DNA of 64,000 nt, from the sequence record OQ708376.1; one strand, given 5' to 3'. Shown here piece after piece: positions 158-18,898 of the stretch. The position numbers and the translations under genes were made by a program. The notes under the pieces were generated by a model. That model saw only the letters and a program-made list of their open reading frames with translations, had not been told where the DNA came from and ran no database searches. Every line of letters starts with the position of its first letter. Position 1 is the stretch's first letter.

Positions 158-779
158 TTCAATTACCCCTTGAGGCTCCAGCAAAAAGTTGGTTAGTACT
201 CCATCCTAAATCTCGATCCTAAAAATTTTGGAGTACCTATGAAATAAAAGTTGGATCTTCGAAAGTTGAAATTTACGTTGGGACGTTTATGATTTGTGGG
301 ATATAATGATGTTTGTAGACGGGTAGTTCTCAAGAATATCAGTACTGAAAGATGAAAGAAAGTTATTGACTTTATGATTCAGTACTGTATAATGTTCTAC
401 ATAGGGTGATGAGTTGCTGCGAACAATTCATTTACTCTACCTCCTGTCGTGAGACAGTACAGAAAAGATAGTTCCTCCTGTGGTGGTACATCTTTTTGAA
501 CCTCATATGAAAATCGTAATAACAGTACTGATATTAACAGAATGGTGTCAGTACTGATTTTAATCTAAAGCATTATGCCACCAGCACAAGCTGGTGGATT
601 CCCTCTAACAGTATTCAGTACTACATGATGGTCTTCATCCTCCTAGGGTAACATAGTGAGGGCTATGATGGCAGTACTGAATACTCCCTTTCAAAAGATA
701 GATCTATGGTATAGTACTGACGGATTTTGGGCGTAGTTACCCTGGATGGATTTTGGGCGTAGATATGTCTAGCCCTCCA

Positions 780-907
780 GAAGTCTGGAAGTAAAGATGG
801 CTATCCATCTAGACGGCTAAACGGCTAGATTTCTGGATGGCTGGATGGCTAGACGTTTGGACGGCTAAACGGCTAGATGGTTACACGTCTGGAAGTATAG
901 ACGGCTA
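780..907 (+). repeat. degenerate 8-bp tandem array, 16 units, consensus GAYGGCTA
   Basis: gatggcta/gacggcta/aacggcta units stay in exact 8-nt register from 780 to 907. Confidence 0.8.
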
Positions 908-1074
908 AATCAAAATTTTATTTTGTTTTTTCCAATAGTTCCCCTACCGCGTGGGGATAGTTTCCCCGCAGTATCTGGTGTTAGATTTTTCTGAATCTGG
1001 AATCATTATCTTATAAACTGGGGGCAATGTCAACGGCCTGGCCGGATATTTTTAAAAATTTTTTCAGTACTGAA

Positions 1075-1125
1075 TTTTGGGCGTAACTATGCACCCGGTG
1101 GGCTTGAGTCTTTCTCGACTTGATG
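1075..1125 (-). ncRNA. candidate small RNA S1 (CCCA-NN-GGGTG family)
   Basis: TTGCTT-16-TATAAT on - strand, then hairpin AGTC-GAGAAA-GACT and AGCCCACCGGGTGC; no ORF. Confidence 0.45.
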
Positions 1126-1224
1126 GAACTATTATACAGTACTGGAAAAATAAAGCAATACCCTGGAAGCAAAAAAGTTTTAATTAATTTGCTTGCTATC
1201 CTGGGCCGGACTATGGTACTATAT

Positions 1225-1280
1225 TTCAGTACTGAGAAAGTGCGTTTACCTGCTAGGGTGCGGGAGTGTATCCTTTTTTT
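1225..1280 (+). ncRNA. candidate small RNA S2 (degenerate)
   Basis: ACCTGCTAGGGTGCGGGAGTGTATCC followed by T7. Confidence 0.35.
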
Positions 1281-1294
1281 ATATCTTGAATTTT

Positions 1295-1341
1295 GGACGG
1301 ATCTTCCCACCCCCTGGGGTATCCGCTTTCTCGCGTCTATG
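1295..1341 (-). ncRNA. candidate small RNA S3
   Basis: TTGACT-16-TATAAT on - strand, then CCCAGGGGGTGGGAAGATCCGTC. Confidence 0.4.
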
Positions 1342-1536
1342 TAGTAATTATACGCTTTTTCAGGATCAAGTCAATACCTAAAAACAAAATAATTGAAAAT
1401 AATTTAACGCGTTTAAACGGCCTGTAAAGCCCTGGAATGATTGGAATGGTGCAAATGTATAGCTTATGTGTATTAATGCGTTAGAATGCGTCTGAGGACG
1501 TTTTACGGGGTATAGGGATGATTTAGTGGATTGATT

Positions 1537-1623
1537 CAGTACTGAATAATAGTACTCCTATATAGAAAGATAGTTCCCCTGGATGATTGCAGTACTGAAT
1601 AATAGTACTCCTATATAGAAAGA
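1537..1623 (+). repeat. 34-bp perfect direct repeat x2
   Basis: cagtactgaataatagtactcctatatagaaaga at 1537-1570 and 1590-1623. Confidence 0.9.
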
Positions 1624-1737
1624 AAACTATTTTAAAAGTATTTGTAGAAAGTACTTGCACCGTACTGATAAAAGCGTATAATGTTTTACATCGAGAGCGG
1701 GAACACTTCCCGCTACACATTAAGAGAGATTAAAACG

Positions 1738-2100
1738 ATGGCGACTCAAATCAATAAAATCATGCTTAACCTGGTAAACTTCCGCGATGAGATGAAAGGT
1801 CTTCCGGCTGAAACTGTAAAAATTCACATTGCAGCTTATCGGGAACTTATTGCAATGTTGCCGCTTAAGCGTGAACAATACGCCGCTACTTTGATGCTGG
1901 ATTCAATGATCCATATAATGATCTCAAATGATTTGACGATGGTTTATCAGTATATGGGCGAAAATTTCGCGGTGTGTAGTAAGCCAGTACCAGGGATGGC
2001 AACAACTGAGGAATTGCACGGCTTAAACTTAAAACAAGATGCATGGGATAATATGCCTCGTTTCCTGGTATGGGCTGACAGTGGCAAAATTTACAAATAA
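1738..2100 (+). CDS. hypothetical early protein
   Basis: ATG after promoter-hairpin-RBS cassette. Confidence 0.8.
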   Translation: MATQINKIMLNLVNFRDEMKGLPAETVKIHIAAYRELIAMLPLKREQYAATLMLDSMIHIMISNDLTMVYQYMGENFAVCSKPVPGMATTEELHGLNLKQDAWDNMPRFLVWADSGKIYK

Positions 2101-2193
2101 GTTTAATAAAGTACTTGCAAACTATGTTTAATGGCGTATAATGTTTTACATCAGGTGGGGAATAGTTCCCCACTATATAAGAGGATTAAAAAA

Positions 2194-2433
2194 ATGGCTA
2201 AATCAAAAATGTTCTTAGGTCACAAAAACAAAACTCATTGGAATGTAAGCCTTTGGATTAATAACGATGAGGGATTGTATCGGTTGGCCCAGGACTTTAT
2301 TAACGATAGCACTAATCGCAATGATGCGGCCCGTCATATGATGTTATTTTTAGAACAGACTGGACAAGATAAAACACCGGACGGATTCAAATATAGCACT
2401 ACTGCGATCCGTGCGGCGATGGTTGGAATGTAA
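2194..2433 (+). CDS. conserved phage hypothetical protein (WNVSLWINNDEGLY...TPDG)
   Basis: GAGGA RBS; motif recalled from a widespread phage family. Confidence 0.8.
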   Translation: MAKSKMFLGHKNKTHWNVSLWINNDEGLYRLAQDFINDSTNRNDAARHMMLFLEQTGQDKTPDGFKYSTTAIRAAMVGM

Positions 2434-2519
2434 TAGAATTTATTTAAAGTACTATCATTTTTTTGCGATAGTACTTTATAATAGTGTTTTATTCATACAC
2501 CAACGATAAGGGCAACAGC

Positions 2520-2786
2520 ATGAAAATTAAGTATTTTGCGACGCGTGAACAAGCTCGGATCGCCGCACGCCAGGACGGGGCAACGTTTAAAGATATGGGC
2601 GTACAATCGGAACGTGGTAAACGTTGGGCCATTGTAAAGCGTAGTACCGCCAGATCATTACAGTACTGGTTAGCGGCCTTAAAAAGTCCCGATAGTGTAT
2701 CGCGTCGAGTGGTAGAAATAAAGCTCGACCGAAAGGGCAACCGCGTGACCGTGTACCGTACTAAAAAGATTGCAGTACTTGAATAA
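2520..2786 (+). CDS. basic early protein, paralogue of 14497..14892
   Basis: shared ATREQARIAAR/FKDMG/RWA/DRKGNRVTVY motifs. Confidence 0.8.
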   Translation: MKIKYFATREQARIAARQDGATFKDMGVQSERGKRWAIVKRSTARSLQYWLAALKSPDSVSRRVVEIKLDRKGNRVTVYRTKKIAVLE

Positions 2787-2867
2787 AAAGTACTTGCAAA
2801 CTATGTTTAATGGCGTATAATGTTTTACATCGAGAGCGGGAACTCTTCCCGCCTATAACCTGGAGTA

Positions 2868-3104
2868 ATGAAAATGACTAATATGTATATGACTGAAGTT
2901 AAAACCGTAAAAGATACTACCACGAATAAAACTACTTACTTACAGCGGATCTGTGGTGTATGGCAACGTATCAGCAAATCAAAGTACTTTAAATTAACAT
3001 CATATGCAAACCGTTCGGATTCATTCAGTACTGAAATAAAAGGTAATAAAGTACACCAATACGGCACTTATTATTATTATAGCCTGGACGCGATTGCAGT
3101 ATAA
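2868..3104 (+). CDS. hypothetical early protein
   Basis: cassette with GGAG RBS. Confidence 0.75.
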   Translation: MKMTNMYMTEVKTVKDTTTNKTTYLQRICGVWQRISKSKYFKLTSYANRSDSFSTEIKGNKVHQYGTYYYYSLDAIAV

Positions 3105-3169
3105 GCAGTTTACAAATCTTTACAATTGCCGGTATTGACTTATTTTGTCAGTACTGGCATAATGTATTC

Positions 3170-3215
3170 ATTGGCAGATAAGCCGTAGCCCATAGGGTGC
3201 GGGAGTGTATCTATA
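3170..3215 (+). ncRNA. candidate small RNA S4
   Basis: TTGACT-17-CATAAT (3135-3163), then AGCCCATAGGGTGCGGGAGTGTATCTA. Confidence 0.45.
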
Positions 3216-3234
3216 GAAAAATTAGTTTAGTATA

Positions 3235-3273
3235 GTTACAATTGTGCACCCGGTGGGTTAGCTGTTGTCATGG
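3235..3273 (-). ncRNA. candidate small RNA S5 (convergent with S4)
   Basis: TTGACA-17-TATAAT on - strand, then AACCCACCGGGTGCACAATTGTA. Confidence 0.45.
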
Positions 3274-3389
3274 GGTATATTATACCAGTACTTGATAATG
3301 CTGTCAATACTTTTTTTTTACTATTCAGTACTGAAAACTATTTTTAAAAAGTACTTGCAAACTATGTTTAAAGGCGTATAATGTTTTAC

Positions 3390-3464
3390 ATCAGGACGGG
3401 GAACGAAATAAGTAACTTCCCGTTAAGTAGCCCAGGAGTAAGGCACACGAAAAACTCCCCTGAT
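3390..3464 (+). ncRNA. candidate multi-stem RNA J1
   Basis: promoter 3356; ATCAGG/CCTGAT closing stem with two internal hairpins; next promoter follows with no ORF. Confidence 0.45.
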
Positions 3465-3532
3465 AAAATAGTTTGACAAATGTTTTTAAAAGCGTATAAT
3501 ACTTACATCAACTACTGAATGAGGGTTACAAA

Positions 3533-4144
3533 ATGAAAACTATCACTACTACTACTTATGTTATGGCTTTTTCTGAATTGAACGCAGAACAACAAACGTC
3601 AGCTATCGAACTGGTTCGGGAACGTGAAAAAAACTCAAACGACAATTATTTTTCTGAAAGTGAAATTGAATACTATAAAGAAACAGTACTACCGGAATAT
3701 GGCATTAATGACGCTGAAATACAATTCAGTGGTTTTTGGTCCCAGGGTGACGGTGCATCAATCAGTACTGACCACGTTGACGCAGTGAAGTTTTTACGCA
3801 AGGTAAGAGCATTAACTAAGTATCGCTCAATCCGTCACTTGCTGAATGAAGATGATTTGGCGATGAGTGTAAAACGTTCGCACTCCCACTACTCGCATGA
3901 GAATACTGTAAGCGGGTACATTGAATCGGCTTACACTGATTTAACCGCAAAACAAGAAACGTTAGTTAATGAGCTTGAGGAACTACTCACTGAAACTATT
4001 CGTGAATTGTCCCGCAAGTTGTACCGTGATTTAGAGAATGCATATGAGGATCAATTCACTACTGAAAACATTACGGCACTGATTGAGGGTAACGAATATC
4101 AATTCAATGTTATTGATGGCGTAGTAGAATCAATCGAATATTAA
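3533..4144 (+). CDS. conserved phage protein (SGFWSQGDGAS family; often auto-annotated as antitoxin-like, unproven)
   Basis: FSEL...FSGFWSQGDGAS...HYSHE...LYRDLE..YE...NEYQF pattern; acidic. Confidence 0.8.
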   Translation: MKTITTTTYVMAFSELNAEQQTSAIELVREREKNSNDNYFSESEIEYYKETVLPEYGINDAEIQFSGFWSQGDGASISTDHVDAVKFLRKVRALTKYRSIRHLLNEDDLAMSVKRSHSHYSHENTVSGYIESAYTDLTAKQETLVNELEELLTETIRELSRKLYRDLENAYEDQFTTENITALIEGNEYQFNVIDGVVESIEY

Positions 4145-4236
4145 TTTAAAAAGTACTTGCAAACTAAGTTTAAAAGCGTATAATACTTTATATCGAGAGC
4201 GGGAATAGTTCCCGCTACTAATGAGGAATACTACAA

Positions 4237-4401
4237 ATGAATACTTTTACCTTCGCTCAATTGAACGCCCTGGATGTATTGTCTGATGCTTTGCGGGATG
4301 CAACTGAAAGCGGTTTATTTGACAATGTTGACATTCACCCTGATGTAATTAATAATTTTTGTGATGCTATCGCAGAAGTACTGGAAGATCTAAAAAAATA
4401 A
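4237..4401 (+). CDS. small acidic hypothetical protein (54 aa)
   Basis: below track cutoff; cassette and GAGGA RBS. Confidence 0.7.
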   Translation: MNTFTFAQLNALDVLSDALRDATESGLFDNVDIHPDVINNFCDAIAEVLEDLKK

Positions 4402-4489
4402 TAGAAAGTACTTGCAATTAGTTTTCAGTACTGTATAATGGTTTACATCAAAGGGAGAAATGGTTCTCCCTGGTAATGAGGAAAATACA

Positions 4490-4711
4490 ATGGCTAATAT
4501 CACTACTCTTTCCCAACTGGAAGCACTGGTTAAATCTATGCGGGAACATGCTGACAAAATCGGCGTACAAGATCCAGCCGTTTGCTTCTGCGACGAATTG
4601 AATGATGATACCCTGGTAATAGCAGAAGTCCAGGACGTTTCTAACTATTCCTCGCGTTACACTGGCGGCGTAGCAAATAAAGGTGACTTCTGTTTATACC
4701 TTACAAAATAA
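4490..4711 (+). CDS. hypothetical early protein
   Basis: GAGGA RBS after hairpin. Confidence 0.75.
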   Translation: MANITTLSQLEALVKSMREHADKIGVQDPAVCFCDELNDDTLVIAEVQDVSNYSSRYTGGVANKGDFCLYLTK

Positions 4712-4746
4712 CAACGCGGGGAGATAATAACTCCCCGTTACTTTTT
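4712..4746 (+). terminator. intrinsic terminator
   Basis: GGGGAG/CTCCCC stem and T tract. Confidence 0.6.
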
Positions 4747-4764
4747 CAGTACTGAATCATTTAA

Positions 4765-4812
4765 TAGACGGATCTCGGCACCCGGTGGGTTAGTGACTGT
4801 TTCGTCTTGATG
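4765..4812 (-). ncRNA. candidate small RNA S6
   Basis: TTGACA-17-CATAAT on - strand, then AACCCACCGGGTGCCGAGATCCGTC. Confidence 0.45.
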
Positions 4813-4954
4813 TAGTAATTATGCCAGTACTGGATGCACTTGTCAACAATTATTTTCCAAATACTTTTTATTAAAATACTTGCAATTAGTTTTTAAACGC
4901 GTATAATGTTTTGCATAGGGGGAGCGGTTCCCCTGGTAACTAAGGAATAATAAA

Positions 4955-5191
4955 ATGCTTGAACAAATCAAATCAACGTCTTCGAATGTAACGGGAACGG
5001 TAGCACACTTTACTAGTGATGAATCGCGGGGCGTTCCCTATTGTGCTGTACATGTAAACACTGAGGGTAACTACTGGTTTACGGTTTACGGATCATATTC
5101 ATTTGGACGGCCTGGACATCAAAAAATTCTGGATAAAGTACAACCAACGGGTAAAAATATCACTGCCGAAATGTTTTATAAAAAATCATAA
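4955..5191 (+). CDS. hypothetical early protein
   Basis: cassette and AAGGA RBS. Confidence 0.75.
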   Translation: MLEQIKSTSSNVTGTVAHFTSDESRGVPYCAVHVNTEGNYWFTVYGSYSFGRPGHQKILDKVQPTGKNITAEMFYKKS

Positions 5192-5275
5192 AGTACTTGC
5201 AATTAGTTTTTAGTACTGTATAATATTTTACATCGCAAGGGGAAACGGTTTCCCCTGGTAACTAAGGATAATCAA

Positions 5276-5575
5276 ATGAAAATTGCAATCATCGCCCTGG
5301 CTTTATCTGTTTCCTCTTTCGCTGTTAATGCGTCATTAGATGTAAGTAGTGAAAAATTCATTCAGTGCACTGTTGCAATGACCGATGAAAGAACTGGCGA
5401 GATTGTATTAAAGGATTTAGAGATCCAGCCGGAAGCATTTAAAAACGGCCCGTTCCATGAAGAAGACGAAAACGGTAGCACGACAATTTATTATGATGCC
5501 AGTACTAAACGCGGTTCGGTCACTGTAATGGATACCGAGAAAGTAACTCATACCGGCGTTATTAATTGCCGTTGA
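5276..5575 (+). CDS. exported/periplasmic protein
   Basis: signal peptide MKIAIIALALSVSSFAVNA; two Cys. Confidence 0.75.
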   Translation: MKIAIIALALSVSSFAVNASLDVSSEKFIQCTVAMTDERTGEIVLKDLEIQPEAFKNGPFHEEDENGSTTIYYDASTKRGSVTVMDTEKVTHTGVINCR

Positions 5576-5596
5576 TAGATACTACGGGGTAACATC

Positions 5597-5827
5597 ATGA
5601 CTAAGCGAATTGTTTTACTTAACGAAAGCAGTACTACACAACTACTTAACGCCGTGCATTATGATATTGAAACGAGCGTTAATCTTATCAGTACTGTAGT
5701 TCTGTTGGACACTGGAAAGGTAGCCAATGATAAAGCGATTGCAGGTATACTAACGGATCTTGTGCCTGGTAGCAGTGCACCAATAACGTTAAATGGTAAA
5801 GTGTTTAATATTTTACTCACTGATTAA
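5597..5827 (+). CDS. hypothetical protein
   Basis: ORF followed by terminator. Confidence 0.7.
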   Translation: MTKRIVLLNESSTTQLLNAVHYDIETSVNLISTVVLLDTGKVANDKAIAGILTDLVPGSSAPITLNGKVFNILLTD

Positions 5828-5833
5828 GTACAT

Positions 5834-5855
5834 AGCCCACCTGGTGGGCTTTTTT
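5834..5855 (+). terminator. intrinsic terminator
   Basis: AGCCCAC-CTG-GTGGGCT and T tract. Confidence 0.85.
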
Positions 5856-5944
5856 GTTTTTGTAGTATCGTAGTACTGAGATACTTTGAAAATAGTTTTA
5901 AAAAAGTAGTTGACATTACCACAGAAAAGCGTAGAATGTATTAC

Positions 5945-6017
5945 ATCAAGACGGGGAGCACTAAGTAGACCGCCAGTAAGTCGAACGAAAAACTGGACAC
6001 GTCGAGAAAACTTTGAT
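5945..6017 (+). ncRNA. structured leader/RNA J2
   Basis: shares ATCA.GACGGGGA, TAAGTAG and AGTAAG-N5-CGAAAAACT with J1/J3. Confidence 0.4.
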
Positions 6018-6060
6018 ACACTAATAAACGTAAACTAAACTTTAATTGAGGATTTATAAA

Positions 6061-6543
6061 ATGGCTAATGTAAAATCATTCATCAAAGCACTGGTAGCAA
6101 ATGAAACTAACGTCGCGGCTGAGATCCTGGCTGAACTGGATAACGATACCATGAAAGCGGTACGCAACAATTTTAACATTGCGTACAGTGAAGCTAAAGA
6201 ACTGCAAGCCAAAAAGGTAGCAGAACTGGAAGAACAGAAAAAAGCCCGTGAAGCAGAACTACAAGCAACAATTGAAAGTATTCAGGCGGCAGTGTCTGGA
6301 TTGGATCTGGAAGTGGTTGTAGAAATGGCACATAAAGCCCTGGCGGTTAAGTACGGTGAAGATAAGCCGGAATCTAAACCTAAAAAATGGATTCAAGAAC
6401 GTGTTACTGTAGTACTTGATAACGGTGAAGAACATTTGATTCCTGTACGCGGTAACTGCATTGCGGTAGTACTGGACGCTATCAAAGAAAGCGGTATGAC
6501 TCGCGAGGAATGGATCGAAGCTCATCGCAAAGTTGAAGCATAA
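6061..6543 (+). CDS. H-NS-like protein (putative)
   Basis: coiled-coil N-terminus; C-terminus VVLDNGEEHLIPVRGNCIAVVLDAIKESGMTREEW parallels H-NS [35 protein letters not shown]. Confidence 0.5.
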   Translation: MANVKSFIKALVANETNVAAEILAELDNDTMKAVRNNFNIAYSEAKELQAKKVAELEEQKKAREAELQATIESIQAAVSGLDLEVVVEMAHKALAVKYGEDKPESKPKKWIQERVTVVLDNGEEHLIPVRGNCIAVVLDAIKESGMTREEWIEAHRKVEA

Positions 6544-6564
6544 CAATTAAAGTACTGAATCACT

Positions 6565-6591
6565 AGCCCACCTTAAACAGTGGGCTTTTTT
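6565..6591 (+). terminator. intrinsic terminator
   Basis: AGCCCAC..GTGGGCT and T tract. Confidence 0.85.
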
Positions 6592-6828
6592 GTGTCTGTA
6601 GTATTCCAGTCCACCAGCACCGCCTAGAATCGATTCTAACGCATTAAACTGATTATCTGATACATCGCCCTAGCTGGTGGCGTTAAGGTCGTTAGAATGC
6701 GATTGAGAGCGTTTAAAGTATTTTGCAAAAAGTAATAAAAAGTACTTGCACGATTAAGAGATTAGCGTATAATGTTTTACATCGAGAGGGGGAAACGGTT
6801 CTCCTTCCAAATCAAAGGAATCAAAACA

Positions 6829-7056
6829 ATGGCTATTATCATTACTCGCGTATCTGGTACTACTGGCAACGAACAAGTAGTTGCAGTCATTACTAACAAG
6901 GCAGGTGCGGAATTGCAAAATGCAATGAATACCTGGGCCGTTAATGAGTTCGGTCAGTGGGCAAGTGTAGCATACATTGAAACCTATCAAGTGCCGTCGA
7001 TTAGTTTAACTGATTTGGGCGTTGAGCGTATCCTTTGCCTGGATGAATTAAATTAA
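6829..7056 (+). CDS. hypothetical early protein
   Basis: cassette and RBS. Confidence 0.75.
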   Translation: MAIIITRVSGTTGNEQVVAVITNKAGAELQNAMNTWAVNEFGQWASVAYIETYQVPSISLTDLGVERILCLDELN

Positions 7057-7142
7057 AAAAAGTACTTGCAAAGTAAATCGAATAAAGTATAATACATTAC
7101 ATCAAGGGGAGAAATGATTCTCCCCACTACAAGGAAACTAAA

Positions 7143-7355
7143 ATGGCTATCATTACTAAAATCAAAGTTAACAAGACTATCGTTAAACTGGCAGAAGTGA
7201 AAGAAGGTTATAAAGTATCTTGGTGCGGTATGTATCGGACGTTCGCAGATATAGATGATGCGATCAATTATTACAGTGACACGGTTAAAAACTTTGTTCG
7301 TGCTGATGTGGTTATGGCAGTGGCAACATATAAAGCAGCGAAAGAAAGTAAGTAA
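7143..7355 (+). CDS. hypothetical early protein, similar to 10054..10233
   Basis: cassette; MAII..K...G.Y.VS.....R...D/E.A pattern. Confidence 0.75.
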   Translation: MAIITKIKVNKTIVKLAEVKEGYKVSWCGMYRTFADIDDAINYYSDTVKNFVRADVVMAVATYKAAKESK

Positions 7356-7446
7356 AAATATTATCACAGTACTATTGACATAGTTTGATAGTACTGGCAT
7401 AATAGATTTTATCAAGACGACACATATTAATTTAAGGAATACTAAA

Positions 7447-8120: not shown

Positions 8121-8171
8121 TCAAAACATCGTTAGCGGTCGATTTAGGCCGCTTATATTGGGGATTATACC

Positions 8172-10482: not shown

Positions 10483-10510
10483 AGCCCACTGGTTAACGCT
10501 GGTGGGCTTT
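10483..10510 (+). terminator. intrinsic terminator containing a Chi site
   Basis: AGCCCAC..GTGGGCT-TT. Confidence 0.6.
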
Positions 10511-11368: not shown

Positions 11369-11431
11369 AAAGTATTGACAGTACTGAAAGATAGTGTATA
11401 ATGTTTTATATCTTAACTGAGGATAGAAATC

Positions 11432-11788: not shown

Positions 11789-11860
11789 TACTTGCATTTA
11801 GTTTTCAGTAGTGTTATAGTACTTACATCAAGGGGAAACATCTTCCCCTACTAAGAGGAA

Positions 11861-12055
11861 ATGAAAATGGAAAACTTATCAAGTATTTTAGTACAAGATG
11901 ATTTCGGTAATCCTGGAAGTGCTATCATTGTTCGGGGTAATAAAGCAACATTTGTTATTGCTGGTGGACCTGTACAGCGTAGCATTAAAAACAATGCCGT
12001 TACTATTAATAATGTACGCTATCGCTTAGATAAAGAATTGATTCATAAACTGTAA
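11861..12055 (+). CDS. hypothetical early protein
   Basis: cassette. Confidence 0.7.
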   Translation: MKMENLSSILVQDDFGNPGSAIIVRGNKATFVIAGGPVQRSIKNNAVTINNVRYRLDKELIHKL

Positions 12056-12082
12056 TATTAATTTAATAGAGGATAACAATAA

Positions 12083-12406
12083 ATGTACATTCATACTACT
12101 ATCACAAAGGAAGTCCGTTGCCAGTTCGAAAGTATTCCGGGCGTATGTTTCATCACTGGTACGTTTTCCCCTGGTGATCGTGATAATCCAGTACTGTTAC
12201 AATTACGCCATCCATCATGGGATAAAGCATTTGATCTACCGTTGAATGAATTCGCAACTACTGCTGAAAAGTACATTAAAAATATTCGCGAGAATGATCG
12301 ACTATTCATTAATGCTTTTAGTGATTCCGCGTTAAGCGAGATCCACGGTGTATTGGTTGCAATCATGGAATCAATGGAGAAAACTAAATTCAAACAAGGT
12401 GAATAA
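12083..12406 (+). CDS. hypothetical protein
   Basis: GAGGA RBS. Confidence 0.75.
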   Translation: MYIHTTITKEVRCQFESIPGVCFITGTFSPGDRDNPVLLQLRHPSWDKAFDLPLNEFATTAEKYIKNIRENDRLFINAFSDSALSEIHGVLVAIMESMEKTKFKQGE

Positions 12407-12489
12407 AAACTATTGACAAGATAATCTAGTACTGTATAATAAGTTACATGAAGGGGAGAAATGATTCTCCCCACTGAGAGGAAAGAAAA

Positions 12490-12702
12490 ATGCAAGGTCA
12501 ACTAATCGTTCGTAAATGGTCTGATACTAACGCTAAACCGTGGGATGTACAATACATCGGACCGGATGGGGTATCACGTTATCAGCCTGGCGTAACGCAT
12601 AGTACTGAGCAATATGCCGCCGCTCACCGCGAACGCCTGTTAGAATCCATGAAACAGGGATACGGTGAAAAATTCATTCAAGATCATTGGCTGAAAGATT
12701 AA
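12490..12702 (+). CDS. hypothetical early protein
   Basis: cassette. Confidence 0.75.
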   Translation: MQGQLIVRKWSDTNAKPWDVQYIGPDGVSRYQPGVTHSTEQYAAAHRERLLESMKQGYGEKFIQDHWLKD

Positions 12703-12719
12703 TATAAGGAGTACAGCTT

Positions 12720-13127
12720 ATGCAAATGAATCCGATGATTATTGTTTTAGCTGTACTTATGATCATTCATGCAATAGTAGAAGTATTAACGCAATCAGGA
12801 GTAATAAAATGATTCAAGTAGAATTATCAGTACTGAAAGATCTGTTTTATCGGTTAGGTACTACTGGCGAGTATCCTAAAAGTGATACCGCAAAACTTTT
12901 TGTATCACTCGACTTATGGCAACGCGAACAATTAGTAATGTCCTGGCGTAAAGGTAAAGCAGATAGCGAGGTGAAAGCATGAAAGAATTCTTATTCGAAG
13001 TAGTGTTTCAAGGTGTCGGTAGTAACCAACTGATTCGCTCAAGTGGTTACAATGTTAACCAGGCATGGAATAACATTAAACAAATGTACCCGAACGCTAT
13101 CACCTATCGCAACCCGAAACAAGTTTA
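12720..13127 (+). CDS. three tiny coupled ORFs (~30, ~57, ~49 aa; first hydrophobic)
   Basis: AAGGAG/AGGAG/GAGG RBSs with ATGA overlaps; below track cutoff. Confidence 0.5.
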
Positions 13128-13181
13128 AAAATAATTGAAAAAGGGATTGACTCCGGTCAGTCCCTTTGCTATTATATACGC

Positions 13182-13223
13182 ATAGAAACAAATCAGCCCA
13201 CAGGGTGCATAAATGTATCTATT
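13182..13223 (+). ncRNA. candidate small RNA S9
   Basis: TTGACT-17-TATTAT, then AGCCCACAGGGTGCATAAATGTATCTA. Confidence 0.45.
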
Positions 13224-13301
13224 GTTTGCTGGTGGCTAGTACTGAAAACTATTTTTAAAAAAGTACTTGCATTGTACTTAGAATCAAGTATAATGTTTTA
13301 C

Positions 13302-13374
13302 ATCAGGACGGGGAACGAAACAAGTAACCCCGTTAAGTAGTCCAGGAGTAAGACATAAGAAAACCTCCCCTGAT
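13302..13374 (+). ncRNA. candidate multi-stem RNA J3
   Basis: near copy of J1 with stems preserved. Confidence 0.45.
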
Positions 13375-13443
13375 AAAATAGTTTGACAATAGAAAGTAAA
13401 CGAGTATAATACTTACATCAACCACTGATAAGGAAACATTAAA

Positions 13444-13719
13444 ATGCGGATTCTACTGACAGCTAACGAAATCGAACAAGTACTGACTACTAACCTGGAA
13501 GACTGGAAACGTGAAGCAGATATCCAGGCGGTTCAACGGCTTAACGATGAGTTAACGCCGGATGACTTAAGCAAGATTGTAGATCCTCAATTCTACGAAG
13601 ATATCCACGACACCGCGTTAAGCGTCGAGGATGTACTAGATAAGCACTACATTGATATTGATTTGCAGGTTTACGGTCGTAAAAACTTTATCACTATTCA
13701 CGACATTTACAATAATTAA
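13444..13719 (+). CDS. acidic hypothetical protein
   Basis: promoter and AAGGA RBS; D/E-rich. Confidence 0.75.
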   Translation: MRILLTANEIEQVLTTNLEDWKREADIQAVQRLNDELTPDDLSKIVDPQFYEDIHDTALSVEDVLDKHYIDIDLQVYGRKNFITIHDIYNN

Positions 13720-13805
13720 GTATTGACAAAGTATCTTAGTACTGTATAATAGTTTACATCGAGAGGGGGAATGGTTCCCCTCCTAACAAAGAGAGAGAAA
13801 TAAAA

Positions 13806-13988
13806 ATGGCTAAATGCACTATCTGTAAGAAAGAAATCGTATTAGTTCCAAGTGCCCGTGAACGTGCCGCTCGGTTCGGTGGCAAAGCGTCAGACTATAC
13901 AAAAATGTTTACTACCCATGCAGCTTGCCAGGTAGCAAAACGTTCACAAGAAAGCGTAGAATTAATGCGTAAACTTTCCAAAAAATAA
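13806..13988 (+). CDS. small putative Zn-binding protein
   Basis: CxxC ... HxxC. Confidence 0.75.
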   Translation: MAKCTICKKEIVLVPSARERAARFGGKASDYTKMFTTHAACQVAKRSQESVELMRKLSKK

Positions 13989-14077
13989 GTATTGACAAAG
14001 TATCTTAGTACTGTATAATAGTTTACATCAAGCGAGGGGAATGGTTCCCCTCCTAACTAAAAGAGAGAGAAATAAAA

Positions 14078-14401
14078 ATGGCTATGATCCTTACCCAGAA
14101 AGTAGAACTGAAAATTGTAACCTCCTTTGACATTAAAGTTAATCGCTGGACTGATCGGAACGGTAACACTTACCACTCTTGCTACGTGTCCGCGTTAATT
14201 GGCGACCGCTGGGAAGACTTGGGACATGAAACCTTTACTTACGGTTACGGTACACAAGGAGAATACACGGGCTTGGAGATCATTAAAGAAACCGTTATAG
14301 GTTTCAACCCGAAAGAAAAAGTTATTCACCGCATCGAAAAAGAGATTAACAAAGAAATAACAGTTCGCTACTACGATGTAAAACGTAAGAAAGACATGTA
14401 A
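14078..14401 (+). CDS. early protein, paralogue of 7447..7770
   Basis: RWTDRNGNTYHSC, FTYGY, DVKRKKD. Confidence 0.8.
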   Translation: MAMILTQKVELKIVTSFDIKVNRWTDRNGNTYHSCYVSALIGDRWEDLGHETFTYGYGTQGEYTGLEIIKETVIGFNPKEKVIHRIEKEINKEITVRYYDVKRKKDM

Positions 14402-14496
14402 TAGAATCCATTTAAAGTACTATTTGACATTGCCCAGATAGTACTTTATAATAGACTCTAACTTGTAGTACTAACTCAACTAATAGGATGTATACC

Positions 14497-14892
14497 ATGA
14501 TTACTAAATTCTACGCTACCCGTGAAGCTGCCCGTATTGTTGCACGCGAGGAAGGAGCAGCATTTAAAGACATGGGCAAAGATGCACCGAAAGGTCAACG
14601 CTGGGCCGTACAGTTCAAAGAAATCTCTGATATCGTGAATTCACCGGAGCCAGTACTAACAGCAGCAGAACTAAAACGAGCGGATTTACTGGCGGCAGTA
14701 CTTAACGCACAAGATGAATTTATCGCTGATTCTGATATCAAAGTACAGACAAACCATACCGCTTGGACTCACGCGGATCACCTGGCAAACCTTAAGCGTC
14801 CAAGTGAACTGGTTCGCAACCAGAAAGAGATCCGACACGACCGTAAGGGTAATCGTGTAACAGTATACAGTAAACGCCGCCAGGTTATCTAA
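14497..14892 (+). CDS. early protein, paralogue of 2520..2786
   Basis: ATREAARIVAR, FKDMG, DRKGNRVTVY. Confidence 0.8.
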   Translation: MITKFYATREAARIVAREEGAAFKDMGKDAPKGQRWAVQFKEISDIVNSPEPVLTAAELKRADLLAAVLNAQDEFIADSDIKVQTNHTAWTHADHLANLKRPSELVRNQKEIRHDRKGNRVTVYSKRRQVI

Positions 14893-14914
14893 TAACTTGC
14901 AGTACTAACAACAC

Positions 14915-14939
14915 GGCGGGATCAGTTCCCGCCTTTTTT
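14915..14939 (+). terminator. intrinsic terminator
   Basis: GGCGGGA/TCCCGCC and T tract. Confidence 0.85.
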
Positions 14940-14954
14940 ATAGGATAAACTAAA

Positions 14955-15209
14955 ATGATTAAGGTACAACTATCTAAAGATAATATCTTGCGGGTACACT
15001 ATAAAGCACCACAGAGAATCATCACAAAGGCCGTACAGCTTGCTAATGAGTTTATTAATGGTAACCTATTACCAAGGAAGTTAAGCAACGGAAAACTGCG
15101 TGTAATCGATGTAGACACTAACAACAGAATAGTAATTGAGAACACAGGAAAGATAAACCTATATGAACACCAACAATATAATAAGAAAATAAAACTAATA
15201 TCACGTTGA
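14955..15209 (+). CDS. basic hypothetical protein
   Basis: AGGA RBS. Confidence 0.7.
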   Translation: MIKVQLSKDNILRVHYKAPQRIITKAVQLANEFINGNLLPRKLSNGKLRVIDVDTNNRIVIENTGKINLYEHQQYNKKIKLISR

Positions 15210-15262
15210 CAGTACTCAATTGTTTTAGTACTATGTACATATACCAACACGGGAGAAACAAA

Positions 15263-15481
15263 ATGAAATTATCTAAAATCGAAAAGAAAACTATTGATGA
15301 AGCAGTTAAGCACGGTTATACCTTTCGTAATGATTCACATTTTACCAATTTTCAACAAGGGTATCGTACTATTAAAAAACTCATTGACAAAGGTTTATTA
15401 GTTGAAGTCAATAACGGCAATGGTATTGAGTATCAACCAACACAAGACGCATTTTATTTTAAGAAATATAATATTATCTAA
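15263..15481 (+). CDS. possible winged-helix protein
   Basis: TIKKLIDKGLLVEV...YQPT pattern. Confidence 0.55.
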   Translation: MKLSKIEKKTIDEAVKHGYTFRNDSHFTNFQQGYRTIKKLIDKGLLVEVNNGNGIEYQPTQDAFYFKKYNII

Positions 15482-15539
15482 TTGACAGTACTCAAATGTT
15501 TTAGTACTATATGTACATACCAACACGGGGAAAAACAAA

Positions 15540-15782
15540 ATGATTACTTTAGAAAAACGTATCAAAGAAACTACATCGCTGGTGGAACTGTTAACAGTAC
15601 TGAAATGCCGTACTACTCGGTTTAGTACACCGGACTTTATTAATATGGTTGATGTTAATGGTCGCTATCGTATCACGGTCGAACAAGGAGCGGCGAAAGT
15701 ATTCAGTACTAAAAACACTAAGGAAGTGATTCACGCTGTAAGTGTTAAAAAAGTAGTTGCCATTGATAGTAAAGTACTGTAA
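15540..15782 (+). CDS. hypothetical protein
   Basis: promoter nearly identical to that of 15263. Confidence 0.7.
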   Translation: MITLEKRIKETTSLVELLTVLKCRTTRFSTPDFINMVDVNGRYRITVEQGAAKVFSTKNTKEVIHAVSVKKVVAIDSKVL

Positions 15783-15813
15783 GATAGTTTCATTAACTCA
15801 AGGAGAACATGCA

Positions 15814-16398
15814 ATGCGTAATTATACTAAATTCATCCGTACCCTGTCAGAAATGGAAACCAACAAAGAGATCCTTTCAGCTTGTCGGTTAGCTGGTCTG
15901 GAGATCATCGGTGCGGGTTCTTCCCGTATTGTATTCGCTTTAAATGATCGGTTAGTGATTAAGGTCGCGAATTGTGATGCGGGTGTAGAACAAAATGAAA
16001 CTGAATGTAAGGTATGGAATTTTTTAGATTATGACCGCCCTCAATTGAAACAGTACTTTGCAAAGGTGCATATGCATTTATGCGATCCTGATAATATGTT
16101 TATCGTTATGGATCGGTTGAGTACTGCAAGTAAAGGCAGTGTAAAGCACGTAAACGCGTGCAATGAATTAAAGTACAATATTAAACGTAATGCCATTGAA
16201 CGCCAGCACCGCTTTGCTGATGCACTACAACACGTTGATGATACATTATCAACACTAACGATAAGAGATATCAGAAAACAGAATATCGGCCAGGATCGTA
16301 ATGGCCTTATTAAAGTACTTGATTACGGTTTAACCCGCAATATCTGGAATCAGTACTATAAAAAGCGTGATGTAGAAGCAAGTAAGGTAACACGATAA
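15814..16398 (+). CDS. minimal Ser/Thr protein kinase-fold protein
   Basis: GAGSSRIVF, VIK, helix-C Glu (NETE), RDIRKQN, LDYG. Confidence 0.85.
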   Translation: MRNYTKFIRTLSEMETNKEILSACRLAGLEIIGAGSSRIVFALNDRLVIKVANCDAGVEQNETECKVWNFLDYDRPQLKQYFAKVHMHLCDPDNMFIVMDRLSTASKGSVKHVNACNELKYNIKRNAIERQHRFADALQHVDDTLSTLTIRDIRKQNIGQDRNGLIKVLDYGLTRNIWNQYYKKRDVEASKVTR

Positions 16399-16451
16399 AA
16401 AAGATTAAAAAAGGGATTGACTCCGGTCAGTCCCTTTGCTATTATATATTC

Positions 16452-16498
16452 ATTGAGAGATAACTCACTGACCCATAGGGTGCGGAAGTGTATCTATT
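16452..16498 (+). ncRNA. candidate small RNA S10
   Basis: TTGACT-17-TATTAT, then ACCCATAGGGTGCGGAAGTGTATCTA. Confidence 0.45.
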
Positions 16499-16619
16499 AT
16501 ATAAGTATTCAGTACTGAAAACTATTTTTAAAAAAGTACTTGCATTGTACTTAGAATCAAGTATAATGTTTTACATAGAGAGGGGGAAATGGTTCTCCCT
16601 GGTAATAAGGAATAAAATC

Positions 16620-16841
16620 ATGACTACAATGACTTGCATTTACGCTTCCAATCTTCTGAATGATGCGGCCTTTAATGTTGATTCAGAATATCAATGTTAT
16701 CGGGATGAAAATAAAAAAGTTTTTGTAGTTGATAATAATGGTTTCCATATTGAATTACAATCCGGTTTCACTGGTGTTGATGGTAAATCAGTGTGGGGCG
16801 TACAGGATGATAAAGGCACATATCATTTTAAACGTAATTAA
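16620..16841 (+). CDS. hypothetical early protein
   Basis: cassette. Confidence 0.75.
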   Translation: MTTMTCIYASNLLNDAAFNVDSEYQCYRDENKKVFVVDNNGFHIELQSGFTGVDGKSVWGVQDDKGTYHFKRN

Positions 16842-16925
16842 GTATTGACAAAGTATATCAGTACTGTATAATAGTTTACATCAAGGGGAGAATAGTTCTC
16901 CCCGATACTAAAAGGAAACAAAATT

Positions 16926-17198
16926 ATGTCCAGCTACTCCGCTACTATGATCATTAAAGATATGAACGGTAATCCTACTTCTGCTGGTGGATCATTTGGA
17001 AACATTAATTTAGATGGTCGGTTATCCATGCAATCAGCCATCGATGCAGCGAAAGAAGTTTTTAAGAATGAATGTACTGTTAGTAAGATGGATTATATGG
17101 GATTCGCTATCGAGAAAACTAATCGTTTTGTGAACTACAAAAATCCACTGATGATTGATACTAACCTGAAAGCTAACGAAGTGGGGTACTTATTATGA
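16926..17198 (+). CDS. hypothetical early protein
   Basis: cassette. Confidence 0.75.
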   Translation: MSSYSATMIIKDMNGNPTSAGGSFGNINLDGRLSMQSAIDAAKEVFKNECTVSKMDYMGFAIEKTNRFVNYKNPLMIDTNLKANEVGYLL

Positions 17199-17386
17199 CA
17201 GTAGAAGAAGTTAAAAAAGTACTGGCAGTACTACGCTATCATAATCATTGCAAGGTGAAGAATGATCCTGATTATGTTGATTCATCCCTGGAGGAAGACA
17301 CATTAAACGCAATAAGCCATATGCAAACATTAGCAAAGCGTATGACCGAAAAGAATAGACCGGACTATATCGGAAATAAAATTTAA
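17195..17386 (+). CDS. hypothetical protein
   Basis: ATGA overlap. Confidence 0.7.
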   Translation: MTVEEVKKVLAVLRYHNHCKVKNDPDYVDSSLEEDTLNAISHMQTLAKRMTEKNRPDYIGNKI

Positions 17387-17472
17387 AAAGTACTTGCATT
17401 GTAGTTAGATTAACGTATAATGTTTTACATAGAGCGGGGGAATAGTTCTCCCGCCAGTCCAGGAGATACACC

Positions 17473-17736
17473 ATGAACACTATCGAAATCACTATCAATG
17501 CACACGTATACGACAACGTAGTACTGCAAACTACTATGACCGCTAATGATACCAGTACTTTGCGGAATACCGTTGTAAGTGCTGTATGTGCTGCAATCGG
17601 TGATGTAGCCCTGGAAAATGCAGAACACATCAACAACGGTTTCACTATGTGCAAACGTGATAACGCAAAACATATCATCTTAGAAGGTTACGGCGGTGTA
17701 GAATATAATCTTTATATGAAAAAAGTACTTGCATAA
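17473..17736 (+). CDS. hypothetical early protein
   Basis: cassette. Confidence 0.75.
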   Translation: MNTIEITINAHVYDNVVLQTTMTANDTSTLRNTVVSAVCAAIGDVALENAEHINNGFTMCKRDNAKHIILEGYGGVEYNLYMKKVLA

Positions 17737-17803
17737 TAACTAAAACAAAGTATAATGTTTTGCATAGGGGGAGATATCCTCCCCCACTAAAAGGAGTAAT
17801 AAA

Positions 17804-18028
17804 ATGGCTAACTTTGATGAACTGATGCGGGAAGTAGCTAACCTGGCAGAAGAGAAGAAATCATTCGATTCTATCTATAACACCGCTCACCGTGATTCAG
17901 TACTGGCATGTACTCAGGATCAAAAAGATGAACTAATCGCCACCTATCATGAAGCATGGAAGTACTACCGACAATGGGAGAAAGAAGAAAGTGAGTCTAC
18001 CATTGACGGCCTCAATAATCTAATCTAA
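17804..18028 (+). CDS. acidic helical early protein
   Basis: cassette. Confidence 0.75.
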   Translation: MANFDELMREVANLAEEKKSFDSIYNTAHRDSVLACTQDQKDELIATYHEAWKYYRQWEKEESESTIDGLNNLI

Positions 18029-18104
18029 AAGTTTTATTTCAGTACTATTGACATAGCTTGATAGTACTGATGTAATAACTTTACTAACTACAAGGGGAAA
18101 CATA

Positions 18105-18362
18105 ATGGAACAGTTCACACAATATCGGGTAAATCCTCAAGCTATGGCCTACGTAGAAGACCATAAAACATTACCAGTACTGCAACCAGTTAAAGGCCAT
18201 ATCTATCGTGCTATGTCGTGGAGTACTGCACAGGATGGATATAAAACCGTTGCCGTGGGTATGTATTGCGGGAATGGTGAATGGTTTGATCCAAATAATC
18301 CGGTAGCCATTGACAGTACTGAAAAAATGAAATGGGCCGACTACATCGAAGATATTTCATAA
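18105..18362 (+). CDS. hypothetical protein
   Basis: promoter and RBS. Confidence 0.75.
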   Translation: MEQFTQYRVNPQAMAYVEDHKTLPVLQPVKGHIYRAMSWSTAQDGYKTVAVGMYCGNGEWFDPNNPVAIDSTEKMKWADYIEDIS

Positions 18363-18451
18363 AACTATTTGACAGTACTAACCAGTAATGTATAATGTTT
18401 TACATAGAGCGGGGGAATAGTTCTCCCGTCAATAGTTTGGAGTAAAACATT

Positions 18452-18652
18452 ATGTCTATCGCTATCGCCCTGGTTGAAGTACTGAAAGAAGCTAAAGCCA
18501 ACCTTATCGATGTACAGATTAAGGAATTACAAAATGGTTTAATCGGCTGTACTTGTACCGCTGGTGGAGCGGCAGACTATCGGGAATTCGAATCACTTGA
18601 ATCGATGGTCCGTTATCTTACCATGATCGTAGAAGATTGGAGAATCATCTAA
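18452..18652 (+). CDS. hypothetical early protein
   Basis: cassette. Confidence 0.75.
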   Translation: MSIAIALVEVLKEAKANLIDVQIKELQNGLIGCTCTAGGAADYREFESLESMVRYLTMIVEDWRII

Positions 18653-18709
18653 CAAAAAAGAATAAAAAAAGGGATTGACTCCGGTCAGTCCCTTTGCTAT
18701 TATATACTC

Positions 18710-18750
18710 ATAGACAAAAACTAGCCCACTGGGTGCAGGAGTGTATCTAA
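18710..18750 (+). ncRNA. candidate small RNA S11
   Basis: TTGACT-17-TATTAT, then AGCCCACTGGGTGCAGGAGTGTATCTA. Confidence 0.45.
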
Positions 18751-18898
18751 AATATATAGTTAATAACGGTGAGTAACTATCTGCTGGTGGGGTGAAAACT
18801 ATTAATAAAAAAAGTATTGACAAAGTATATCAGTACTGCAATAATGTATCTCGTAGGGCGGCAATGGTGCGACGGCCCACAAAGTTAGGAGATTCAAA

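Follow-up and report, generated by a model that had tools for sequence, protein, structure and literature searches.

Why should a phage crowd Chi, the octamer that E. coli RecBCD is established to recognise, into the ends of its genome? The question came from a window of DNA, the opening 64 kb of Escherichia phage vB_EcoM_CRJP21, a Rak2-like jumbo phage (Asteriusvirus) of 366,301 bp whose record names Escherichia coli as the host. A preliminary description of the window had counted nine copies of 5'-GCTGGTGG-3' on the + strand and two on the - strand within the first 19 kb, and one - copy (58765) afterwards. Our exact search agrees, giving 9 + and 3 - copies, 12 in 64 kb. The cluster had been placed in an 'early region'. 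It is real, and its boundary turned out to be sharper than that: all the clustered sites (11; 9 + and 2 -) lie inside 1-20152, which is the left copy of a direct terminal repeat (DTR). The idea that the region might be a terminal repeat had been a guess, and it was a good one. When we rebuilt the genome, 1-20152 and 346150-366301 were identical to the last base, an exact DTR of 20,152 bp that leaves 326 kb of unique genome. Assembler contigs are about twice as deep within the DTR as beyond it, and the DTRs of relatives, mapped by PhageTerm and restriction digests, are 20-21.5 kb.

The repeat differs in character from the DNA that follows. It is richer in GC than the unique genome (38.3% and 33.8%), its coding fraction is 64%, and it carries 12 perfect consensus promoters where the next 20 kb has none. 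It opens with a non-coding leader (1..1737; the first annotated CDS begins at 1738) that holds a terminal hairpin, sigma70-like promoters, a repeat array at 808-907 and a back-to-back pair of Chi sites. Rfam gave no match in the 64-kb window. Early expression of a DTR has been shown by RNA-seq for PA5oct only; from that relative and from the promoter density here, we infer that the DTR is the early region of CRJP21 too. For gene functions we set aside the product names in the record because the labels are out of register by about seven genes; what is called 'nuclease subunit', for instance, is a baseplate hub-lysozyme.

Reading from the left terminus, the first Chi (578..585, - strand) is active for RecBCD entering at that terminus, 577 bp away, and is kept in fEgEco12, vB_Ec-M-J and 121Q. 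It forms the left arm of a 20-bp palindrome (578-597) whose right arm is the + site at 590..597, the last + site for a leftward RecBCD crossing the DTR. An opposed intergenic pair follows at 6611..6618 (-), the second site active for left-end entry and one that is lost in 121Q, and 6673..6680 (+). Both the palindrome and the opposed pair are as the preliminary description had them. The remaining sites are all on the + strand. Those at 10498..10505 (22 nt past a stop codon and overlapping a terminator-like hairpin), 13228..13235 and 18783..18790 are intergenic. The other four sit in coding sequences: 11960..11967 in CDS 11867-12055, 16983..16990 in CDS 16926-17198 and 18560..18567 in CDS 18452-18652, each read as Ala-Gly-Gly, and 15578..15585 in CDS 15540-15782, read as Leu-Val. 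The 18560 site is lost in 121Q. In the right-end copy of the DTR the 18783 site is 1,362 bp from the genome terminus, the first Chi that RecBCD entering there would meet, and related metagenomic contigs with other flanking sequence have its octamer intact. The copy at 58765..58772 (-) is isolated in unique DNA, outside the cluster and at background level. Seven of the 11 DTR sites are thus intergenic in a repeat that is mostly coding, the coding sites use two reading frames, and the flanks have no sequence in common. As the source of the cluster we also considered an extended motif surrounding Chi, a family of paralogous genes and a family of terminators, and rejected all three.

How far is this from chance? 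The first estimate had been about 0.1 sites per strand per 20 kb, which is close to what Markov models of orders 0-4 return for the first 20,152 bp: 0.11-0.33 on the + strand and 0.03-0.08 on the - strand. The Poisson probability of at least nine + sites in the DTR is about 1e-10, and the enrichment is some 25-30 fold in both orientations. Dinucleotide shuffles of the window yielded 0.37 +/- 0.56 sites, and none of 100 reached the observed 12. A density no higher than that of permuted octamers had been named beforehand as the result that would speak against the idea. Among 168 permutations counted on the + strand of the DTR, Chi came top with nine copies; the mean was 0.29 and the next best three, and the two octamers with three copies overlap strings made of Chi plus its flank. 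Variants of Chi with one mismatch are depleted (0.15/kb vs 0.66/kb). The genome-wide count that had also been proposed places the DTR far above its Markov background and the unique region near its own, with 14 sites (9 + and 5 -) against 5.0 and 3.2 expected. Expressed as density, the DTR has one Chi per 1.83 kb and the unique genome one per 23.3 kb. Zheng et al. give one per 4.6 kb for E. coli, one per 1.86 kb for the lambdoid phage LLS and one per 1.90 kb for P1, so CRJP21 exceeds the density of its host only locally, in the DTR.

The same DTR-confined, +-biased cluster is present in four further lineages. In fENko-Kae01 we counted 12+/2- sites in a 19.7-kb DTR against 1+/1- in the next 30 kb; in Muenster 7+/1- against none beyond; in CBB 7+/2- against 2+/1-; and in XbC2 7+/2- against 1+/1-. 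The DTRs of these lineages cannot be aligned, yet the exact octamer recurs in them, and judged by their sequences the recurrence is independent. fENko-Kae01 even has the same back-to-back arrangement, 483 bp from its end, in unrelated flanks. Chi is the top permuted octamer in all four of the DTRs tested in this way (CRJP21, fENko-Kae01, Muenster and CBB); among the over-represented GC-rich octamers of XbC2 it comes fifth. Within the genus, sites turn over while the count holds steady at 9-10, and the octamer is kept in 41 of 44 site-by-relative comparisons where about 28 would be expected from flank identity. CMSTMSU was intended as the relative at middle distance; its one 'lost' Chi may be a sequencing error because its record carries an unverified flag and its ORFs are broken up. 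Relatives with the cluster infect Klebsiella and Pectobacterium. As a control with a different host we took PA5oct, a Pseudomonas relative, in place of XbC2, which has the enteric octamer despite its reported Xanthomonas host. Its 39-kb DTR contains no GCTGGTGG, nor is it enriched for the proposed Pseudomonas Chi, so the Chi strategy is not general to the clade. DNA of fEgEco12 is cut in the pattern predicted in silico; its bases are therefore probably unmodified and Chi readable.

Chi is polar, and this is where the argument becomes more demanding. RecBCD responds to the octamer only when it arrives from the octamer's right. The nine + sites are therefore active only for a leftward enzyme and serve the right-end copy of the DTR; against RecBCD entering at the left terminus they do nothing, and cover of the left end rests on the two - sites, 578 and 6611, only. 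The preliminary description had RecBCD meeting an active Chi from either side, which holds on nine sites at the right end and on just those two at the left. If 20-40% recognition is assumed per site, two active sites would capture 36-64% of the enzymes entering at the left. A symmetrical model of end protection, taken purely, fits poorly for this reason. The polarity is not peculiar to CRJP21. Four genera taken together have 35 + and 7 - sites, with mean relative positions in the DTR of 0.63 (toward the right) and 0.27 (toward the left; Mann-Whitney p = 0.001). In every lineage a Chi of the correct orientation lies 0.4-1.4 kb from the right terminus, and three lineages have a - site within 0.2-0.6 kb of the left virion terminus.

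With enrichment, exact confinement to the DTR, polarity and recurrence in other lineages all observed, the explanation we consider probable is that Chi has been selected in the DTR so that RecBCD, arriving at the ends of the injected genome, becomes a loader of RecA, the genome being spared and recombination between the repeats driven. Host RecBCD would load on both free ends of the linear DNA and reach an active Chi while still within redundant sequence, after 1.4 kb at the right end (the first of nine + sites) or 0.6 kb at the left (the first of two - sites). There it would cease to degrade the 3'-ended strand and load RecA, and degradation would halt before unique genes were reached. The RecA-coated 3' tail of one repeat could then invade the second, and the product would be a circle, a concatemer or a replication fork primed by recombination. 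Both the action of RecBCD on these ends in vivo and the recombination that would follow between the DTR copies are steps we infer. Protection or recombination priming had been suggested from the start; it stands as the best reading, with the repeat terminal, the enrichment specific to the octamer, its recurrence elsewhere and its absence from the Pseudomonas relative, and with the orientation corrected.

Could the cluster be there for something simpler? One reading, rather unlikely in our judgement, has Chi acting purely as a shield or decoy, attenuating RecBCD, or inactivating it once Chi has been recognised, so that the injected DNA lasts until phage functions take over, with recombination between the repeats left to a phage recombinase or not needed at all. 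Enrichment, orientation and host specificity speak for it exactly as they do for RecA loading; the phage has its own RecA-like, SSB and Mre11/Rad50-like genes, and a redundant DTR could serve as a sacrificial buffer. Against it, the Smith laboratory's analysis ties Chi protection in vivo to RecA-dependent recombination and not to a simple blockade of the nuclease, and it is the invading-end model that predicts confinement to a homologous repeat together with a one-sided + excess. That excess, 35 sites to seven, would suit a single direction of end exposure late in infection, where Chi might protect, or make recombinogenic, rolling-circle tails or the free ends that terminase leaves on cutting concatemers at the DTR boundaries; in lambda, according to the literature, Chi orientation is tied to the direction of packaging. 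But with a single Chi cluster every 346 kb the tail of a concatemer would be poorly protected, and the - sites so close to the left virion terminus in three lineages point to virion ends. We think a late role improbable.

Two further readings are more improbable still. RecBCD degradation, Chi and spacer acquisition have an established link, reportedly from Levy et al. 2015, and from it one could argue that the main selective force is to limit the gain of spacers by CRISPR, or other defences that draw on the fragments RecBCD makes. Such an effect would, however, be a by-product of any stop at Chi, and it does not account for a polarity that is conserved or for a cluster that keeps to homologous DNA; we give it very little weight. 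As little goes to a cluster unrelated to RecBCD, arising as a by-product of composition, coding or promoter and terminator repeats, or from a site for a phage protein that happens to coincide with Chi. The DTR is indeed the more GC-rich part of the genome (38% vs 34%), promoter and terminator motifs are repeated many times in it and one Chi overlaps a hairpin. Yet Markov models up to order 4 expect no more than 0.33 sites, neither permuted octamers nor one-mismatch variants are enriched, the sites have unrelated flanks, GC skew in the DTR does not exceed that of the rest, and the exact octamer stands in the DTRs of four other enteric lineages, which cannot be aligned, and that of PA5oct lacks it. 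This reading is disfavoured.

Conversion of RecBCD into a RecA loader has its own difficulties. CRJP21 departs from what marks the Chi-exploiting P1 and LLS phages, the want of a phage recombination module: at 189.8-226 kb it encodes RecA (PF00154, E = 1e-14), gp32-like, Metallophos/Mre11-like and Rad50-zinc-hook proteins, and with these it may not need host recombination. XbC2, reported from Xanthomonas, still has the enteric Chi. CRJP21 may also make a protein that protects its ends or opposes RecBCD, which would count against our explanation. PHROGs and Pfam scans of 48 DTR proteins, most of them without known function, found no RecBCD inhibitor of the Gam, Abc2 or gp5.9 type; the matches were to DksA/TraR, GNAT, ParE-like, kinase and DUF families only, and the PHROGs listed are all of unknown function. 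The literature we searched held no plating results for these phages on rec mutants.

A bolder version of RecA loading, which we hold tentatively and think doubtful, though possible, makes the polar array a start device, powered by the host, for the first round of replication or for concatemer formation. RecBCD from the right end would be converted at one of the nine sites and the RecA-coated 3' end would invade the left repeat. Host enzymes would prime the process at a time when the phage has no replication or recombination protein of its own, and the two sites at the left would do no more than preserve the duplex that is invaded. If this is true, Rak2-like jumbo phages would show a conditional need for host recA and recBCD, and a Chi-dense block would mark the DTR in any unresolved assembly of the clade.

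Our search of the literature found no description of Chi clustering in the DTRs of these jumbo phages, although there are instructive parallels. P1 (with its relatives P7 and D6) also injects linear DNA with terminal direct repeats, has Chi far above expectation (1 per 1.9 kb) and concentrates it at the virion ends, so RecBCD finds an active site whichever end it enters. P1 is temperate, however, and packages by headful with variable ends, whereas CRJP21 is virulent with fixed DTRs on a 366-kb genome. Chi in P1 lies on both strands across tens of kb, unlike the exactly DTR-confined, 9:2 biased sites here; CRJP21 has a RecA-like gene of its own; and in P1 the dependence on recA and recBC, with the Chi-dense redundancy used for cyclisation, is proven, whereas for CRJP21 it is a prediction. 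In the LLS phages Chi also lies toward one end, is mostly active for RecBCD entering there and is not accounted for by the GC content of the region, and Zheng et al. 2025 read the clustering as direct selection for Chi. Phages of LLS type have neither recombination genes nor a RecBCD inhibitor, and their growth is enhanced by RecBCD; CRJP21 is at background Chi density outside its DTR. T5 resembles CRJP21 in its long non-permuted DTR, which houses numerous small genes under promoters of host type. The T5 DTR is the first part to enter (first-step transfer, pre-early) in a two-step injection, and RecBCD is one of the host functions that its pre-early proteins neutralise. The 10.2-kb DTR of T5 has only two + Chi. 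The E. coli chromosome uses the same octamer, with sites oriented for RecBCD that starts at a break and heads for the DNA that is to be kept; its sites are mostly in ORFs and have been argued to ride on codon usage, in contrast to the largely intergenic sites of this 38% GC repeat.

What would follow? Direct selection for Chi, argued so far for P1-like and some lambdoid temperate phages, would extend to virulent jumbo phages with their own recombinases, in at least three enteric host genera (Escherichia, Klebsiella and Pectobacterium, besides the reported Xanthomonas host of XbC2) and in a group under development for therapy. The predicted phenotype in K-12 is altered growth on recA, recB, recC and recD hosts. 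The strand asymmetry may offer a handle on which genome end is exposed first, and on how linear genomes of 350 kb become replicable after injection. Many Rak2-like genomes have been deposited with arbitrary starts, and in these the Chi cluster could serve as a sequence marker for the terminal repeats. The 20-bp palindrome had 46 matches in IMG/VR, almost all in high-GC contigs of ordinary size and probably there by chance, and the one relevant match was the 121Q contig.

Escherichia phage vB_EcoM_CRJP21 (OQ708376.1) is a Rak2-like jumbo myovirus of the genus Asteriusvirus with a genome of 366,301 bp, to whose bases 1–64000 the window is identical. When the whole genome was rebuilt from the record, bases 1–20152 recurred exactly at 346150–366301, through the final base. 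Four lines of evidence support a direct terminal repeat (DTR). DTRs of 20,993, 21,525 and 20,668 bp have been reported for the relatives fEgEco12 (by PhageTerm and restriction digests), vB_Ec-M-J and Sharanji, respectively; assembler depth roughly doubles within the repeat relative to the sequence beyond, in a bovine-gut metagenome as well as in the run of the isolate itself; GC content, 38.3% in the DTR, falls to 33.8% past its boundary; and a cluster of Chi sites at 578–18790 fills the repeat and ends with it.

Chi is the octamer GCTGGTGG, a signal for the host enzyme RecBCD. An exact search of the window placed it at 590, 6673, 10498, 11960, 13228, 15578, 16983, 18560 and 18783 on the + strand and at 578, 6611 and 58765 on the − strand, where dinucleotide shuffles of the window hold 0.37 ± 0.56 sites. 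The palindrome at 578–597, in which four bases separate a Chi complement from a Chi, and the opposed pair 6611/6673, both picked out in the preliminary description, are present as it described them. Markov models of orders 0–4, fitted to the DTR, predict 0.11–0.33 sites on + and 0.03–0.08 on −, so both orientations are enriched some 25–30 fold (P ~1e-10 on +, 0.003 on −). The 326 kb of unique genome sits at background, with 9 + sites where 5.0 are expected and 5 − sites where 3.2 are, and 11 of the 25 non-redundant sites fall in 5.8% of the sequence (p = 5e-8). The preliminary description would have been refuted by permuted octamers as dense as Chi; across 168 permutations the + strand mean was 0.29 and the second-best word reached 3, against 9 for Chi. 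The DTR is poorer in the 24 one-mismatch variants (0.15/kb) than the unique genome is (0.66/kb). It is the exact Chi word alone that is favoured. The remaining octamers enriched in the DTR are parts of repeated promoter motifs, to which Chi does not belong.

Could the cluster be a by-product of something else? A repeat family is disfavoured by the unrelated flanks of the eleven DTR sites, which share no sequence in the 40 bases on each side. A by-product of coding is disfavoured as well: seven of the eleven are intergenic, although 64% of the DTR is annotated coding sequence (p = 0.06), and the four within genes are spread over two reading frames. Nor does the DTR have a stronger GC skew than DNA elsewhere. 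The site at 10498 overlaps a terminator-like hairpin, which the other DTR sites do not.

Orientation gives the cluster a direction. Since a + site acts only on RecBCD arriving from its right, the nine + sites are inert toward enzyme entering from the left terminus. In the right-end copy, counted from the right terminus, the same sites lie at 1.4, 1.6, 3.2, 4.6, 6.9, 8.2, 9.6, 13.5 and 19.6 kb, where they would be in the active orientation; RecBCD entering at the left terminus would meet the − sites at 578 and 6611. If Chi is recognized 20–40% of the time at each site, which is our own estimate, nine sites would capture 87–99% of RecBCD and two sites 36–64%, an asymmetry that the preliminary description had not noted.

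Within the genus the octamer is held more tightly than its surroundings. Comparisons with fEgEco12, vB_Ec-M-J, 121Q and CMSTMSU, four relatives that are not independent of one another, find it kept in 41 of 44 cases against about 28 expected from flank identity. Phage 121Q has lost two sites, gained one and still has 9 on the + strand. Chi is absent from about 20 kb flanking the DTR-equivalent in 121Q and in CMSTMSU, and from 29 kb past the fEgEco12 DTR. The spacer at 586–589 is ACAA in CRJP21 and vB_Ec-M-J, whereas fEgEco12 and 121Q have the reverse complement, TTGT, between the same flanking sequences; on this comparison of sequences, the back-to-back palindrome is found in two flipped states among isolates. 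In related metagenomic contigs from runs X4 and X10, substitutions and insertions are listed just after the Chi at 18783 (18783–18807), with none inside the octamer.

The same Chi pattern recurs in further lineages whose DTRs cannot be aligned with that of CRJP21. The whole-genome scan covered CRJP21, and the other lineages were compared over 20–30 kb of flanking DNA. The Klebsiella phage fENko-Kae01 has 12 + and 2 − sites in a DTR of 19,736 bp (1 + and 1 − in the adjacent 30 kb); Muenster, a Klebsiella Alcyoneusvirus, 7 + and 1 − in 20,030 bp (none in the adjacent 25 kb); the Pectobacterium Mimasvirus CBB 7 + and 2 − in 22,456 bp (2 + and 1 − in 22.5 kb); and XbC2, reported on Xanthomonas, 7 + and 2 − in 17,581 bp (1 + and 1 − in 22 kb). 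Chi ranked first in the permuted-octamer test in all four DTRs of CRJP21, fENko-Kae01, Muenster and CBB; in XbC2 it came fifth among over-represented GC-rich octamers, after promoter-related words. Pooled over four genera, DTR sites number 35 on + and 7 on −, and they are sorted along the repeat, with mean relative positions of 0.63 (rightward) for + and 0.27 (leftward) for − (Mann–Whitney p = 0.001). A Chi in the correct orientation lies 0.4–1.4 kb from the right terminus in every lineage, and 0.2–0.6 kb from the left in three. A back-to-back pair also lies 483 bp from the left end of fENko-Kae01, with a different spacer and flanks unrelated to those of CRJP21.

A host outside the enteric bacteria provides the control. 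The related Pseudomonas phage PA5oct has no copy of GCTGGTGG in its 39,080-bp DTR (1–39080) and a single copy of GCTGGCGC, the octamer proposed as Pseudomonas Chi; by this count it gives no sign of a Chi strategy. With no Chi cluster in the PA5oct DTR, the enrichment tracks enteric hosts rather than the clade's DTR machinery. XbC2 is the exception. It was reported on Xanthomonas vesicatoria but shares over 50% similarity with Erwinia phages, and its enteric Chi may reflect an Erwinia-like enteric natural host, a recent host switch or a Xanthomonas RecBCD that reads the same octamer.

How might such sites work? In the mechanism we propose, RecBCD would load at the ends of the linear genome after injection and meet Chi within redundant DNA, whereupon degradation of the 3′ strand would stop and RecA be loaded. 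Loss would be confined to repeat DNA, and the 3′ tail, able to invade the other repeat copy by homology, could give rise to a circle, a concatemer or a fork primed by recombination. That Chi is restricted to the only DNA with a homologous counterpart fits this invasion model, as does the surplus of sites serving one end. Chi in the DTR could instead be purely protective, or could act late, at concatemer and packaging ends. Chi may also be of no consequence at one end if a protein protects that end; among the 48 small DTR proteins, none was recognized as a known RecBCD inhibitor. The bases of fEgEco12 DNA are probably unmodified, since its restriction cutting is reported to match in silico prediction. 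Outside the DTR, CRJP21 has genes for RecA-like, gp32-like, Mre11-like, Rad50-like and UvsW-like proteins, and having recombination proteins of its own it is not of the "no Rec module" type.

The closest known systems are P1 and its relatives, followed by lambdoid phages of the LLS class. P1 has dense Chi where its terminally redundant ends fall, and its cyclization requires RecA and RecBCD; in the LLS class, Chi is terminally clustered and RecBCD aids growth. Densities are nearly equal, at 1 per 1.83 kb in the CRJP21 DTR, 1 per 1.86 kb in LLS and 1 per 1.90 kb in P1. CRJP21 differs in being a virulent jumbo phage with its own recombination genes and a DTR that is fixed rather than headful-generated, and in having its Chi sites strictly within the repeat with a strong strand bias. 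T5 has a similar DTR architecture but differs in that its pre-early proteins counter RecBCD and its DTR holds two Chi only. These, at 8127 and 8689, are the only ones in its first 30 kb; both are + strand sites close to the inner end of the 10.2-kb DTR, and in the right-end copy they would lie 1.5–2.1 kb from the terminus in active orientation. In the literature we searched on Chi sites, terminal repeats and jumbo phages, no link between Chi and jumbo phages was found, and the Asteriusvirus genome papers discuss DTRs with no mention of Chi or of RecBCD acting on them. The Chi reading of the CRJP21 DTR yields a directly testable prediction.

The repeat is also rich in promoters. It has 12 perfect sigma70 consensus promoters (TTGACA-16/17-TATAAT; 153–20152), of which 11 are on +, and some 45 that match the consensus at 10 or more of its 12 positions, roughly one per small gene. 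In the 20 kb after the DTR perfect promoters are absent, and promoter-like sites are less frequent than in shuffles of that sequence. This density fits early expression by host RNA polymerase; in PA5oct, RNA-seq has identified the DTR genes as early genes. Almost all of the 48 proteins (1738–20000) are unassigned in function, the recognizable domains being a DksA/TraR zinc finger, a GNAT acetyltransferase, a ParE-like toxin, a protein kinase and several DUFs. The kinase gene (15814–16398) is conserved throughout the clade and makes a useful DTR marker.

Other features of the repeat were noted in passing. The hexamer AGTACT has 129 copies in the DTR (6.4/kb) and 764 in the unique genome (2.3/kb), well over base-composition prediction. 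The commonest DTR octamer is CAGTACTG (33 copies). Many copies adjoin the −35 element of repeated promoters (AAAGTACTTGCA), and this motif is also dominant in the CBB DTR. One 28-nt hairpin (12-bp stem) occurs in identical form at 13140–13167, 16410–16437 and 18668–18695, with a variant at 9113–9140; each of the three identical copies overlaps a TTGACT −35 element, and the hairpin resembles a cassette that joins terminator and promoter between early genes. A small hairpin at the left terminus (5–21; 6-bp arms, 5-nt loop) is kept in three Asteriusviruses, and a degenerate array of 8/16/24-nt repeats, with units such as GGCTAGAT and GGCTAAAC, lies at 808–907; either could be a packaging or ejection signal. 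Product names in OQ708376.1 are displaced by about seven genes: the "nuclease subunit" label sits on the baseplate hub-lysozyme gene, gp_355 is the true large terminase and gp_358 the true RecA-like protein.
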